From Parasitella parasitica NRRL 2501 (lineage: Eukaryota > Fungi > Mucoromycota), in assembly GCA_025201805.1 (NCBI GenBank), contig MU619276.1, forward strand, positions 162,805 through 226,804: 64,000 bases of DNA, read 5' to 3'. Below, in pieces: positions 14,072 through 20,101 of the stretch (the stretch's first letter is position 1; each line of letters begins with the position of its first letter). The notes under the pieces are model-generated. The model saw only the letters and a list, made by a program, of their open reading frames with translations, was not told the DNA's origin and did not search any database. Position numbers and translations under genes: made by a program.

Positions 14072-15319
14072 ATGTCAAATAGAATAGGAGGCCTACCTTT
14101 ACCGGCAGGCTCTCTTTCGAGCAAAAGAACGGGAGGAGGAACAAAGCTATTTGTGAATGCAAACGGAACGGTGCTCTCCTCGGTATCAACATACATCGCA
14201 GCTTCGATCTTATCAACGTTTGCCAACAAAATGCTGTTTACTTATTCCGAATACAAATTTCCATATCCTTGCTTCACAGTCTTTTTCCAGCTTGTTATTT
14301 CGCTGATACTTATGGCTGCATGGAGCCACGTTGGACTATTGTAGGTGGTTTACTACTATTCTTTATTCTCTATTTTTTTTTTTTTTTCACCGTCTGTTTG
14401 TTCCCTAGCAACCATACATTGCCTCGAATACCAATATTAAACTGGGATTCTGCAGTGGCGATTCGCGTAGCGCCATTGACCATTGTGTTCATCTGTGTCA
14501 TAATATTCAATCCTCTCTTCCTGCAGCATGTCGAAATCACAACATATCACTTTGCCCACTCGCTCACTATCGCTTTCTCGATCGTATTTTCATACCTAAT
14601 GCTGCGAATAGAGCAACCACAGCGGATAGTGTCAGCAAGTGTAATAGTCATCTTTGGTACCTGTATAGGGTCCATGGGAGACCTTAATTTCTCACTTGTA
14701 GGTGCATTTTATACTCTATCGTGGCCTGCTGTAGTGGCATTGTATGGCATCTATCTGAAAAAGACGTTGATCGCATTGAAAAACGATTTATGGTAAGCAA
14801 ATCCAACGCAAATCAAAAGTGCAGCACCAACAACAAACACACAGGGCGCTTGTGCAGTATAATACTGTCATGGCAACTGCAATTATGGTGCCTCTTGTCT
14901 TGCTCTCTGGAGAGCTAAACGAGATATTCTCCACTGTTTGGTTTTGGGATGAATTTGGATTCTGGTTACAGATGTTTATTACCACCCTGACTGGATTTGG
15001 TGTTACTATCTCGATGCTATTATTATTAATGCATACATCCCCCCTGACGTTAAGTGTGGCCAGCGTGTGCAAGGTAAGGCTCATCAGTCAGGCTGCTTGG
15101 CTGATTCATTTGGTAATGTAAAATGTGATAGACAAGTATACAGGCTCTTGTTGTGGCTGTCGTGTTTGGAAATCGAATGACAATGCTTGTAAATATCGCT
15201 GCGGAAAAAACACTACAGAACACTCATTTCTTTGTCCTTAGAATACGGGTGGCATGGCTATCTCGCTCGCTGGATCAGCTTATTTTGCTTATTTGAGATC
15301 TGCGGAATCAAAATTCTAA
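14072..15319 (+). CDS. Nucleotide-sugar transporter, TPT/SLC35 family (GDP-fucose transporter SLC35C1-like); true start may lie upstream (about 13720-13860)
   Basis: Multi-TM exons: FANKMLF...FPYPCF, LQHVEITTYHFAHSLTIAFSIVFSY, HTSPLTLSVASVCK, ending AYLRSAESKF*. Confidence 0.75.
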
Positions 15320-15698
15320 CCTGCATGCCGGACCTGGTCGTTGTTGAGAATAGACGGCAATAATACGGTATTGTTATAATAATAAAAGCAAAAAGCCCTT
15401 CTATAACAAGAGCCGTTGTGGCACTGTTTGCATTATACATCAACAGCCAAAAAAAAAAAAAAAAAAAAAAAAAAAACGCGCCTATTTGTTTATGCACTTT
15501 TGCTTGCAATCATGTATTATATAACCTAAGCCTAAATCGTTGCTTTAGTTGGAATCTTGCTTTTCTCAGTTTGATTGTCTATAAATAAGCTGTCTGCATC
15601 AAACTAAGCCTTGGGATCAATACCAAACACCTGAAAATGTATATAAACGACAAGGCTATAGACAGCAAAAACAACATTTCCCATATTTATCACAAAGC

Positions 15699-18600
15699 AT
15701 GGCATCAATTGTAGCATTTGTTATTTTGTTATTGCTGTCAAGTTTCAATAAAGTGAATGCCTACTATGGTAGTATTTATGGCGGTGCGTCATACATTCCG
15801 CCTCTGATAGACGCGGCAGCCGTTGCAGTACAAGACACAGTATACCTTTTTGGAGGGGTCGAAGCTACCCTCGAACAAGATTTCAACTTTGATATGACAA
15901 CTATAAAATTCGATTCGAATCAAAACCTGGTAACCAACACTTTCGATAGTGCCTCCTTGCCGTACAACAGACATCGCTGTCAAGCTTTTTCGCTGGGCGA
16001 CAACAAGACGATTGTAGCTGTCAACGTCCAATATCCACATCTCAACATTACTCAGGGACACCCGTATTTCAATATAAGTGCAGAGCACACCCAAGGAAAT
16101 ATAACTACGCTCAGAACAGCAGGTCTATCTTTCTATGATATAGCAAGCAATACTTGGACTAGCCCTCAGAACAACACAATTCTACCTCCATTCAGATCAA
16201 CTCTTATGGCAGCAATCTCCCCTGAAAATGATGCTATTTATACGATGGGCGGCACCTACCTTGCCGCAGACGCTAATATGCCAGAGATTTTTAGATTCGA
16301 CCTCAAAAACGTATCCTCCGTAGTCAATCTGACAGCTGCCTACCCAAACTTGAGACTGGAAGTGTTCCGTGGCACAGTTCAGATGTTACCGTATGTTGGT
16401 TAAAAGCTTAAATTTGATAACGACACTAATGCATGTAACGATAGAAACGGAATCATAGTTATTGCTTTTGGCATGAATAATGTATTAGACGGGGCACTTT
16501 TCAACACGACTCAAGTAACTCTATTTGACACACGCAAGAATGAAATTTATACACAACCCGTTTCTGGAGTACCGCCAGAACCAAGATTTGGGCTTGGAAA
16601 CGCATTGGGTATTATGCTTTGCAAAGTTGTGTCGGAACAGAATACTGATTTCGAATTTCCATCTATAGGTCCTGATAAATCCACAATATACTACTATGGA
16701 GGTATGCTGGTGTACAGATGCATGAAATCGATTCCCAGCTAACGTATTTTTGTTCATAGGTGGTGACCAAATGGCTGCATTGAACACCGCAGCAGGTTCA
16801 GCCGTACCAAACCTCGTTGCGCTTGATACAACTACATGGACGTGGGTTTATCCAAAGGTTCTTGGACTTGCAGCTACTCCCTATGCTTTCTCCACATTAA
16901 CATTACTAGAAGATTCTAAACTGATTACACTAACAGGTTAGTGGGCAATGTTCAATTATCACATATGCAGTCGGCTAACTTATGGCACATGCAAACTTTA
17001 ATAGGCATTATTGGTAGTATTGCTACAACTGATATCGGTGTCATCACCAATGTTCCAAAATCTAGTGAAGAGCTCCAAAACAGCCAAATGCGATGGTTTA
17101 CAAACAATGAGGAATTCGATCAAACTTACCTGGTTACGGAGCCGCGCAAAGAGCTTAGTCAAGGTGCTATTGCTGGCATTACTATTGGAGTTTTGGTCGT
17201 AGTTGCACTGTTGATCGCACTCTTATGGAAAAGATTTCCAAAGGTAAGACGCATCGGAAACTATATACAGAACGAAATTATTTGGCATCCAAGGTTAGTA
17301 TATTTCCAAATTTTGCAGACAAGCAAAGCAAGTTTTTGACTTGACGGTAAACTACAGATCTGGAGAACCGTTGTGGGCAGAAACAGCACGACTCTTGGTT
17401 CGCTTTATTCTCCTGTTTTTGTTTTTGGCATTTGTTGTATACTCGATCTACAGGGCTGTTGAAAGCCCTATTGTAACCCAAGAAATAAGAACACCCACCA
17501 ACACCGTTAGATCACCAGGTAAATTTTGATTAACGATAAAAACAAAAACAGCTTCTAATTGTAAAGCATAGATGTTCGTTTTTGCTTTGATGGCTTCAGC
17601 AATACGGACCCTACTCAGAATCTAAGTGTCACTTGTGCCTTCCGAAATGGTACAGATTGTTCAAGCCGAATTGTAGCGCTAGATATGGCTGAGCATTCGC
17701 CCGTGTATCCCGATCAATTAGGAGATGTTACCTGCTTCATGTTTATATCCGAACCTGCATACTCTTTCATTGACGATAAAATGAGTTTTAGTCAAACTAC
17801 AAGCACAAAGATGTTGTTCACCTTTCAAGGTCCACCAAGACTTTCTACAGAGGGAATTTCGGACGGTTCAGGCGTGATTTACATTGACATGTATCCGCCA
17901 GGTTACAACCCAAACATGGATATCTACAACTTGACTGGTGGTGCTGCTCAGAGCAAACTTACTTCTACATACATCAGAGAGTGGGCAATCAACGAACAAG
18001 GTTCTAACTTGGTAGATTCGATTATTCTTAAACCTAGTGTCAGGACAACAGCTGCATTCGAGATAATCGAAAATAGAAAGCTGCGGAGGGATGATGGATG
18101 GAACCTTGTGGGGTTTTCGTCCAACTATGACAAACGCTACGAGGTTGAAAGCTACTTTAAAGATGCACCTCAAAATATTGGATTGTTGGGATCCTCCAAA
18201 ATTTTAGCACAGCTCACTCTACAACCTTACGCATTTACAATCAACGTCAACAACGAGCAAAAAGTGTTCACTCTTCTGAACGCATTTGCACAAGTCGGTG
18301 GTGTCCTTGGTTTATTCATAGCTTTGCAAACCATTCTCTTTGGCTTCAGACCTCAATCTCCTTGGGGCATCGTTCATCGCTGGTCGTTTGGTAAACTTCG
18401 AGTCAAGCTTACAGACAGGTTGGCCAATTATTTCGATCGCATGGGGACACCCGTACCGCTAGTCAATCCTGTGAGTCGAAGATTAAGCACAGTATTCAAG
18501 AACAATGCATATTCTGCAGTACCTGGTTATTCCTACGCTGATGAAGAAGCTTTTAGCCAAGAAAACAGAGTGCACCAAGTGGAAGAACGTCTGCAGCTAA

Positions 18601-18932
18601 TGGAGCTTTTGTTAAAATCATACTATTTGAATGATGAAGTATTCCGCTCTTTAGATCAAGCTGTCAAACGTGGAAATGAAGAAAGACGTCGCAGTAATGG
18701 AGGACAAGGAGGACAAGGACAAGGGGAAAGAGAAGATAGAAGAATCATTGATGATGCAATTATGATGTCTGGAGACGATTCCATTGAGATTATTGAATTA
18801 AGTAACAATGCAAAAGCAGCTGCAGAAAGTGGTTCTACTGATGCAATCAACAGAACGACGTCTGGTGCTGTACTTCCTCAGCAAAGGAGTATATACCAAG
18901 CAAATCTAGTTCCAGATCAGCCAACCCCTTAA
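15699..18932 (+). CDS. 958-aa membrane protein: signal peptide + Kelch repeats + TM + two-TM DEG/ENaC/PAC-like module + cytosolic tail (7 exons)
   Basis: Exons 15699-16390, 16445-16608, 16669-16701, 16760-16936, 17005-17293, 17358-17518, 17572-18932 join in frame via GT-AG introns (2877 nt). Kelch GG motifs (VYLFGG, IYTMGG, IYYYGG, LDTTTWTW) and three hydrophobic helices after the signal peptide. Confidence 0.85.
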
Positions 18933-19232
18933 GTAATTAATGTATTTCACATATACTATATACCGTATACGCCTACATTTCTAATAAACAAAATCCTTTC
19001 ATATATCGAATGATTTACAAGTACCATAAACACTTGCGATACTTTTAACATATTATTAAATAAAACAGAGTGTTCAGCTTAAAAAATCGCCTTGTATACG
19101 GTAGTTAGACCATGTCCAATTTTCGAGAGGTCTAAGCTATTCAAAAAGCATTTACTTTGTTTACAGAGCTTTCATTAAACAAGATAAACGAAATCTCATT
19201 CTACATGCCAAGCAAGTATTGCAAATACTTTT

Positions 19233-20101
19233 TTTTTTTTTTTTTGTAAGTATGAAGGTTTATTAAATGTTAAACTAAGCTAAAAGTTAAGAAACTCATA
19301 AAAAGGGAAATATTAGAAAGTTAGAGATAAGTGGCCCGTCTCGAGGATGTTCAAGAGTTATCTACAATAATTTAAACAAGTGTCTCAGGTTGATCATGGC
19401 ACGGTCCATAACGGATTGGTTGTCAAAATCAACAGTTTCAAAGAATTTAAGCCATTTGGCCCGCCAGATGGCTGTGATCACGCATGTAAAGGCTTCAAAG
19501 GTAGATATCCGCAAGAAGGAGTCTAAGAGACGATATGCGGACAAATTTAACGACATTACGTCTTCGTATACTTTAGCCATATTGAGGGATGCAGAGGGTA
19601 CGAATACCAAGGAGAAGTAATTCCACCAGATTTCAGAATGAGTAGGACAAGTAAAGAGCATATGACAAGTAGTCTCCCGCATACCGCAATAGACACACAT
19701 TTCATCAGTCAAACGAAGAATATTGACTATGTTAGCTTTGGAAGAGACTTTGTTAGGGATCAGACGAAACCATAAGTTACGAGCTGCACTAGGCATTTTG
19801 GTGTGAAGAAAAGAGGTCATTGTGAACCGATTCAAGTCAACGTGTGGTCGGGCAATTGGGGGGTGATCTCGCATATACATCGCACGAAGCTGAGTATTAG
19901 TCATGGACAAGACCGGTATACTTTGGTAGTTAAGCTTGTGAGAGAGGTAAGGAGTAAAATCGACGCCACCCGCAGATGAGGCCGGGAGAGCAAGTCCAGA
20001 CGGAGGAGATAAACATATTTAGAGCGTAGGTGTAAAGGTTAGAGCAGCTGAGCTTACGGCCTGCTTAAGCTTCCTGAGGAGTACAGGGTGAGGGCAGTTG
20101 A
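19233..20101 (-). mobile_element. 5'-truncated L1-clade LINE (ORF2 C-terminus, zf-RVT) with poly(A) tail and 11-bp TSD
   Basis: ARNLWFRLIPNKV...CVYCGMRETTCHMLFTCP...IWRAKW motifs. Poly-T at 19229-19245. TSD CAAATACTTTT at 19222-19232 and 20102-20112. One in-frame TAA upstream of the listed ORF. Confidence 0.88.

Follow-up and report, generated by a model that had tools for sequence, protein, structure and literature searches.

Here, we analyzed a stretch of 64,000 nucleotides (nt) from the fungus Parasitella parasitica NRRL 2501 (Mucoromycota; contig MU619276.1, positions 162,805 to 226,804; referred to as the window) and focused on one gene at 15699-18932 on its forward (+) strand. The gene encodes a protein of 958 amino acids (aa) in which a Kelch beta-propeller is followed by a module of two transmembrane (TM) helices with an ectodomain between them. 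The predicted fold of this module resembles that of two groups of ion channels, the DEG/ENaC/ASIC family and the proton-activated chloride channel PAC/ASOR (TMEM206, PF15122).

One spliced gene for both halves

The gene comprises seven exons (15699-16390, 16445-16608, 16669-16701, 16760-16936, 17005-17293, 17358-17518 and 17572-18932, all on the + strand), defined by a spliced transcript contig and a check of the reading frame, which add up to 2,877 nt, that is, 958 codons and a stop codon. The six introns between them (16391-16444, 16609-16668, 16702-16759, 16937-17004, 17294-17357 and 17519-17571) are all of the GT..AG type, measure 53-68 nt and each interrupt a single reading frame. All six are spliced out exactly in a single 2,909-nt Logan contig from a public run (X1; depth 113, no mismatches), which aligns to 15703-18944 and extends 12 nt beyond the stop codon. 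At its 5' end the contig is cut by adapter four bases after the ATG, and the 5' untranslated region lies outside it. Since the frame is unbroken over every exon joint in this contig, both halves of the protein, Kelch and C-terminal, belong to one mRNA, and the gene is confirmed as a single spliced transcription unit covering both. The first-pass annotation, made from the sequence alone, had joined the open reading frames (ORFs) through six GT-AG introns into one 958-aa protein and had named separate Kelch and C-terminal transcripts as the observation that would speak against it; the contig skips the same six introns, and one spliced molecule spans both halves.

Layout of the protein and the Kelch propeller

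From N- to C-terminus, the protein consists of a signal peptide, a six-blade Kelch propeller, a first membrane helix (TM0), a linker, TM1, the ectodomain, TM2, an FRPxSPWG motif and a C-terminal helix. Hydropathy, computed exon by exon, gave four segments, namely the signal peptide, TM0, TM1 and TM2. The predicted signal peptide (21 aa, 15699-15761, +) ends in KVNA before YYG; it corresponds to a hydropathy peak and agrees with the N-termini of the homologs P0026, P0039, P0040 and P0182, in each of which such a hydrophobic leader recurs, with A|YY or A|FY coming next. It is followed by the propeller with its stalk, encoded by exons 1-5 (15762-17165, introns excluded, +) and containing eight N-X-S/T sequons. 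TM0 (17166-17228, +; AIAGITIGVLVVVALLIALLW; Kyte-Doolittle 3.04) is an additional membrane helix that would anchor the propeller. After it comes a basic stretch, KRFPKVRR; the basic, predicted cytosolic linker of ~55 aa (17229-17391, intron 17294-17357 excluded, +) ends with the conserved motif W-x-P-R-x-G-E-P-x-W. This pre-TM1 motif, defined in an alignment of 49 sequences, is split by an intron (17283-17293 plus 17358-17376, +).

The C-terminal module begins with TM1 (17392-17451, +; hydropathy 2.67), which corresponds to helix 11-40 in the model of an orthologue and aligns with TM1 of ASIC and PAC chains. The ectodomain of ~270 aa (17452-18269, intron 17519-17571 excluded, +) is supported by the beta-rich orthologue model, structure comparison and HMMER, and carries several recognizable motifs (all +): a post-TM1 strand, SP..VTQ..SPDVRFCFDG (17464-17594), whose SPDVRFC part straddles the last intron; CFMF (17733-17744); NPN (17907-17915); GWN.VGF (18096-18116); and the last strand with EQKVF (18213-18269). 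Between TM1 and TM2 there are three N-X-S/T sequons and four Cys residues, the latter invariant in a 16-row alignment. TM2 (18270-18344, +; TLLNAFAQVGGVLGLFIALQTILFG), the candidate pore helix, was recognized by hydropathy, by Pfam ASC and by its alignment to TM2 of ASIC in a profile search of the Protein Data Bank (PDB). HMMER alignment places A-L-Q (18321-18329, +) where DEG/ENaC channels have the G-A-S belt. It is followed by a conserved motif (FRPQSPWGIVHRWS; 18345-18386, +) for which no counterpart was seen in ASC or PAC, and by a conserved, helix-like C-terminal segment (..VEERLQLMELLLKSYYLNDEVFRSLD..; 18561-18674, +) that is predicted to be cytosolic; the tail beyond it is low-complexity and variable.

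The hydropathy profile, the sequons and the conserved Cys residues agree with one topology and thereby support it: the pattern fits a propeller outside the cell (or in a lumen), a cytosolic linker, an outer ectodomain and a cytosolic tail. The order of elements, from signal peptide to PQSPWG, was thus read correctly in the first-pass annotation, and the motifs EQKVF..GGVLGLFIALQ and PQSPWG are indeed present. Its count of four Cys in a loop lacking a Cys-rich thumb was also right.

The exons were searched singly, and two contiguous orthologues, P0002 and P0182, were modeled as proxies for the joined 958-aa protein. Pfam matches to Kelch families occur in exons 1, 2 and 4, all under the gathering score, as every exon holds only a fragment of the domain. 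In relatives with contiguous sequences, scores rise well above the cut-off of 50 bits (78 bits for P0182 from Gilbertella persicaria and 148 bits for P0039). The AlphaFold2 (AF2) model of P0182:1-440 (predicted local distance difference test score, pLDDT, 80; predicted template modeling score, pTM, 0.77) contains the leader as a helix (residues 2-12, low pLDDT), strands that form recurring blade-like units, and from residue 396 a long helix (DSSP 396-436) that corresponds to TM0 and extends into the linker. Foldseek matched this model to six-blade Kelch domains (ESP, KLHDC3/10, Keap1 and LZTR1; E 4e-17 to 6e-13). Therefore, through P0182 and P0039, both profiles (PF24681, PF24981 and PF01344) and fold bear out the Kelch propeller proposed at first. 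Like propeller proteins of the attractin/LZTR1 type (PF24981) and the KLHDC2 type (PF24681), the fungal protein has six blades and then a single TM helix; unlike them, its propeller is joined to a channel-fold module.

Fold and family of the two-helix module

The module was modeled on residues 105-475 of P0002 from Rhizopus arrhizus, the closest contiguous orthologue (68% identity to exon 7 by BLASTP; 73% in alignment A1, which has 16 rows over TM1, loop and TM2), with AF2 as a template-free monomer. The model reached a pLDDT of 78 and a pTM of 0.67, with values of 80-91 in the beta-rich ectodomain loop. When it was compared with the PDB by Foldseek, all 50 matches listed were PAC/ASOR or DEG/ENaC-family channels (ASIC, FaNaC and BRTNaC1), at a probability of 1.00. 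The top 19 were all PAC/ASOR (E 2.2e-10 to 4e-8, TM-score by target at most 0.56; best match 7sqg_A, E 2.2e-10), and ASIC chains were found at E 5e-8 to 7e-7. An independent all-against-all structure search (VIA) over 48,161 representative chains gave the same answer: every one of the top 11 entries was a DEG/ENaC or PAC channel (Z 10.3-12.9; e.g., 9jf7_A at 12.9, 6ave_A at 12.7, 6bqn_B at 11.4 and the PAC chain 7ji3_A at 11.9, with 241 of 259 residues aligned). The next fold was Erv41p at Z 7.5, and beyond it there was only helical noise. ENaC chains consisting of the ectodomain alone (6wth_B, Z 11.2, and 9blr_A) still reached Z ~11, so the fold match is not due to the two helices alone. The P0002 model thus displays two TM helices with the palm/beta-ball ectodomain of DEG/ENaC/ASIC, and the compact form of the same plan known from PAC is recovered by both Foldseek and VIA. 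The channel-like fold suspected from the sequence agrees with these predictions, and it is highly probable from the models that the module has an ENaC/PAC-type fold, probably as a very distant homologue.

A shape search of the ESM Atlas ranked four Mucoromycota clusters first, then a ciliate cluster (PF27811, Y80K_N; mostly Ciliophora, transmembrane; TM-scores 0.52/0.49 to the module model), and behind it the TMEM206 and ASC clusters (TM-score by query 0.48 and 0.53, respectively). PAC clusters in this atlas are chordate. Apart from the ciliate cluster, whose score makes it a lead only, this language-model atlas added no named family; the ciliate cluster may represent a further non-animal branch of the fold.

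Sequence comparison gave traces pointing in the same direction. Exon 7 (452 aa) had no match to any Pfam family at E<=1 and none in the PDB with phmmer at E<=10. Among the members of A1, Pfam ASC (PF00858) was the commonest family, found in 13 of the 16 with a best E of 2e-4 and always concerning the pre-TM2/TM2 part (HMM positions 399-442 of the profile hidden Markov model). In a six-frame scan of the whole 32.8-Mb genome, the ASC HMM had one match only (20 bits), the TM2 region of a paralogue of our gene. When a profile of 49 sequences (A3) was searched against the PDB, the top ten matches and 15 of 20 in total were ASICs (best E 0.025). HMMER aligned three weak, collinear segments with ASIC5, namely PDiRFC with FPAVTFC, sCyLF with nCFTFN, and the final strand plus TM2 with EQ..GGQ(L/M)GLF, the last one gap-free; weak collinear alignments were also obtained with ASIC2. 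In these alignments a-i-q (A-L-Q in the window) stands opposite the ASIC G-A-S, and the Q is conserved in at least 90% of A1. An Arg three residues past TM2 is invariant in A1 and occurs in 90% or more of the 49 A3 rows; that it is equivalent to the pore lysine of PAC is a guess.

The alignments to DEG/ENaC motifs proposed in the first-pass annotation were recovered by HMMER, including the gap-free EQKK..GGQMGLFIGAS segment and the position of ALQ at the GAS filter. Its description of the module as more PAC-like or minimal is fair with regard to size, although the sequence traces point to ASC. None of these traces is significant alone, and we regard them as corroboration of the structural result rather than proof, in view also of matches of the kind discussed below to YqhR and in Thermotoga.

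The module belongs to a sizable fungal family. A word search with exon 7 found 38 relatives, several with Kelch in the same gene model, and all those with a species name were from Mucorales. An exhaustive profile search retrieved 338 clusters (50% identity) at E<=1e-3, of which 123 reached E<=1e-30. Every looked-up representative with a name was from Mucoromycota, including many genera of Mucorales, Jimgerdemannia (Endogonales) and Ambispora (Glomeromycotina), and the Mucorales origin proposed in the first-pass annotation is confirmed. The module of most long proteins from Mucorales begins near residue 400, behind the propeller. The proteins of Ambispora and Jimgerdemannia have 379-423 aa and begin shortly before TM1. 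These stand-alone versions indicate that the two-TM module is an autonomous unit; in Mucorales it is extended by a signal peptide, a Kelch propeller and TM0. A hidden Kelch region in front of the stand-alone genes was considered and rejected by inspection of the upstream sequence, as no Kelch-like coding sequence was found in 5 kb or 1.2 kb upstream of the Ambispora/Jimgerdemannia genes.

The P. parasitica genome has at least five paralogous loci, each with Kelch directly upstream of the module. Besides the locus in the window (genome contig C40), they lie at C117:89382-90473 (L001), C122:61388-62511 (L003/L007), C96:55398-56513 (L004, which holds the sole genomic Pfam ASC match) and C7:103695-104811 (L005/L008). 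In other species, family members with consecutive locus tags (HPULCUR_007402/007403 of Helicostylum pulchrum) or on the same 262,836-bp contig (KAI7890912 and KAI7890927 of Mucor mucedo) suggest tandem duplication. Many database entries of the family are fragmentary (P0001-P0019 and P0026): there are ORFs of the last exon only, P0026 lacks one blade segment, and P0007 apparently retains an intron. The fused architecture is therefore under-represented in public annotation.

Conservation across the 49 sequences is highest in three places: the pre-TM1 motif W-x-P-R-x-G-E-P-x-W, the TM2 pattern L..(L)G..GG..GL and the post-TM2 motif G-x-R-P-x-S-P-W-G. R and E of the first motif occur in 90% or more of the sequences, and stand-alone members likewise keep its EP core. 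The last motif has an invariant P and G in SPWG and an R in at least 90%. TM2 is more conserved than TM1, which is variable together with most of the ectodomain, the exceptions being the four Cys, P-D-I-R-F-C, N-P-N and W-N..G-F. The C-terminal segment is conserved in Mucorales and recognizable in Ambispora and Jimgerdemannia. Such a pattern, judged from sequence conservation, would be expected if TM2 and its two cytosolic flanks formed the core of a pore or gate.

With regard to the surroundings of the gene, a 182-aa ORF just downstream (19362-19910, -) matches Pfam zf-RVT, the zinc-binding region of reverse transcriptases, marginally above the cut-off (28.4 bits) and is probably what is left of a non-LTR retroelement. 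Upstream, an exon-sized ORF (14819-15118, +) has a sub-threshold match to TPT (triose-phosphate transporter; 19.9 bits) and is probably the end of the neighboring gene. Homopolymer runs flank the gene on both sides, an A run at 15449-15477 upstream and a T run at 19230-19246 downstream.

A candidate Kelch-tethered channel

It appears that the best explanation of these data is a Kelch-tethered module with the fold of DEG/ENaC/ASIC and PAC that works as a trimeric ion channel, to which we assign a probability of roughly 55%. To our knowledge, every characterized two-TM protein of the ENaC/PAC fold is a trimeric channel. Compared with DEG/ENaC/ASIC (chicken and human ASIC1, ENaC, FaNaC and the centipede BRTNaC1/PDPNaC1), the fungal module shares a beta-rich ectodomain held between two TM helices whose ends are cytosolic, and in the same order a P-x-V-x-F-C strand, a C-Y/F-x-F strand and the pre-TM2/TM2 pattern E-Q..GG..GL. 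It differs in an ectodomain shorter by ~100 aa and in the addition of FRPxSPWG, a signal peptide, a Kelch propeller and a third TM helix. With PAC it shares a similar overall size of helices plus ectodomain, the minimal ectodomain without a thumb and the best Foldseek matches, whereas any sequence signal of the TMEM206 HMM is lacking.

Several observations weigh against this interpretation. On the structural side, the models were built on orthologues rather than on the joined protein of the window, as monomers and from shallow alignments of 16 and 18 rows; TM-scores are moderate (0.41-0.56), and pLDDT falls below 50 immediately after TM2 in the P0002 model. On the sequence side, ASC scores stay under the gathering score of 23.6 bits (15.7 bits, E 0.0081, for member 1, and 20 bits for the genomic paralogue), and the similarity is limited to the hydrophobic GG..GL helix. 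An unrelated membrane family, YqhR, also matches six members, and the ASC HMM unexpectedly gave a match above the cut-off in the control genome of Thermotoga maritima, which calls for caution about its specificity in six-frame scans. The TMEM206 profile matched no member at E<=10; it had no match in the genome at E<=10 either, which is weak evidence because the controls of that scan were equally silent. With regard to hallmark motifs, the HG motif before TM1 is absent, with W-x-P-R-x-G-E-P-x-W in its place (the window has H-P, and the H is not conserved), and so are G-A-S in TM2, with A-L-Q instead, and the Cys-rich thumb, the ~270-aa ectodomain having four conserved Cys. Because it fails both the sequence thresholds and the hallmark motifs, the module is a member of neither DEG/ENaC nor TMEM206, and we regard it as a fungal branch of its own within the shared fold. 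Ion selectivity is not predictable from a protein without GAS and HG motifs.

One alternative is that the module is homologous and has the ENaC/PAC-type fold but does not conduct, the protein being a surface receptor, adhesin or cell-wall sensor whose ectodomain and Kelch domain bind ligands and whose pre-TM1 motif, FRPxSPWG and C-terminal helix recruit signaling partners. Although we consider this rather unlikely, it has several points in its favor. The pore hallmarks of the animal channels, GAS and HG, are not conserved. PAC is known to have a pore lysine, and this residue may be counted among the hallmarks that are not conserved. The strongest invariants, FGFRPxSPWG and the C-terminal helix, lie on the predicted cytosolic side and might be docking sites, and an extracellular propeller with a single anchor helix recalls receptor architectures. 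However, a non-conducting role would set the family apart from the characterized two-TM proteins of this fold; TM2 keeps small and polar residues (N, GG, G and Q) that would be unusual in a mere anchor, and stand-alone members, which have no receptor domain, retain TM2 and its flanking motifs.

It is considerably less probable that the ENaC/PAC likeness is analogous or an artefact of prediction, and that we are dealing with an unrelated two-TM protein specific to Mucoromycota, whose loop would be a generic beta-sandwich comparable to the lumenal domains of Erv41/Erv46. The lack of a significant sequence match (E 0.025 at best in the PDB, ASC under its cut-off), the shallowness of the alignments behind the models and the appearance of Erv41p in the structure search would be compatible with this view, but ~3 Z units separate the 11 ENaC/PAC entries from everything else. 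The scores of the ectodomain-only ENaC chains, the probability of 1.00 for the 50 Foldseek matches listed, the three weak motifs in the same order as in ASICs and the fact that the ASC HMM picks out one paralogue in the whole genome are further arguments against it. The weakest alternative, that the two halves are separate genes fused only through a gene-model error, would agree with the many public gene models that are confined to the last exon or to the N-terminal part, but it has effectively been refuted already by the single contig with its unbroken frame, by fused gene models in many genera and by the same Kelch-then-module order at all five paralogous loci.

If the module indeed forms a channel, the protein would be a type-I-like glycoprotein whose secreted six-blade propeller is anchored by TM0, with the short conserved linker in the cytosol joining TM0 to the channel-fold module. 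Three subunits might join via the palm-like ectodomain around a pore presumably lined by TM2, so that three propellers would flank the channel ectodomain on the outside (or in the lumen). There they could bind a glycan, a cell-wall component or a soluble ligand, or serve as a mechanical tether. Displacement of the propellers might then be transmitted through TM0 and the pre-TM1 motif to the cytosolic side, where pre-TM1, TM2 and FRPxSPWG would make up the mouth. In ASIC, part of the lower pore is built from the pre-TM1 region. The fixed architecture, with TM0 leading straight into the conserved pre-TM1 element, is the basis of our hypothesis that the Kelch domain gates or tethers the channel. 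A related idea is the tether model of MEC-4/MEC-10 in Caenorhabditis elegans, in which an ENaC-fold pore is coupled to an extracellular anchor; the tethers proposed there are separate proteins, whereas the fungal propeller is part of the same polypeptide.

DEG/ENaC channels are regarded as essentially animal, with few protist outliers. In a previous survey, many eukaryotic groups, Fungi among them, were searched by BLAST with DEG/ENaC queries, and the only candidates reported came from holozoans, a single alveolate and a single stramenopile (Elkhatib et al., 2023; PMC10507113). The literature, of which our coverage is incomplete, yielded no account of an ENaC/PAC-like protein in fungi and none of a Kelch domain fused to a channel. 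We see an about even chance that the family represents a third, fungal (Mucoromycota) branch of ENaC/PAC-fold trimeric channels, and that Mucorales gained a covalent Kelch receptor and a TM helix, giving a receptor- or tether-gated channel in one polypeptide.

A conserved and expressed fungal family with this fold, present in multiple copies (at least five paralogues in P. parasitica NRRL 2501), would broaden the known range of the fold. As a candidate sensor and a candidate pore lie in one chain, the protein offers a natural test of the idea of tether or receptor gating. Mucorales include agents of mucormycosis, and a surface channel or receptor that is restricted to this lineage and has a large ectodomain is therefore of interest as a marker or target. 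If our interpretation is true, the channel fold predates animals or reaches well beyond them, and the Mucoromycota family would supply an outgroup for the relationship between ENaC and PAC.

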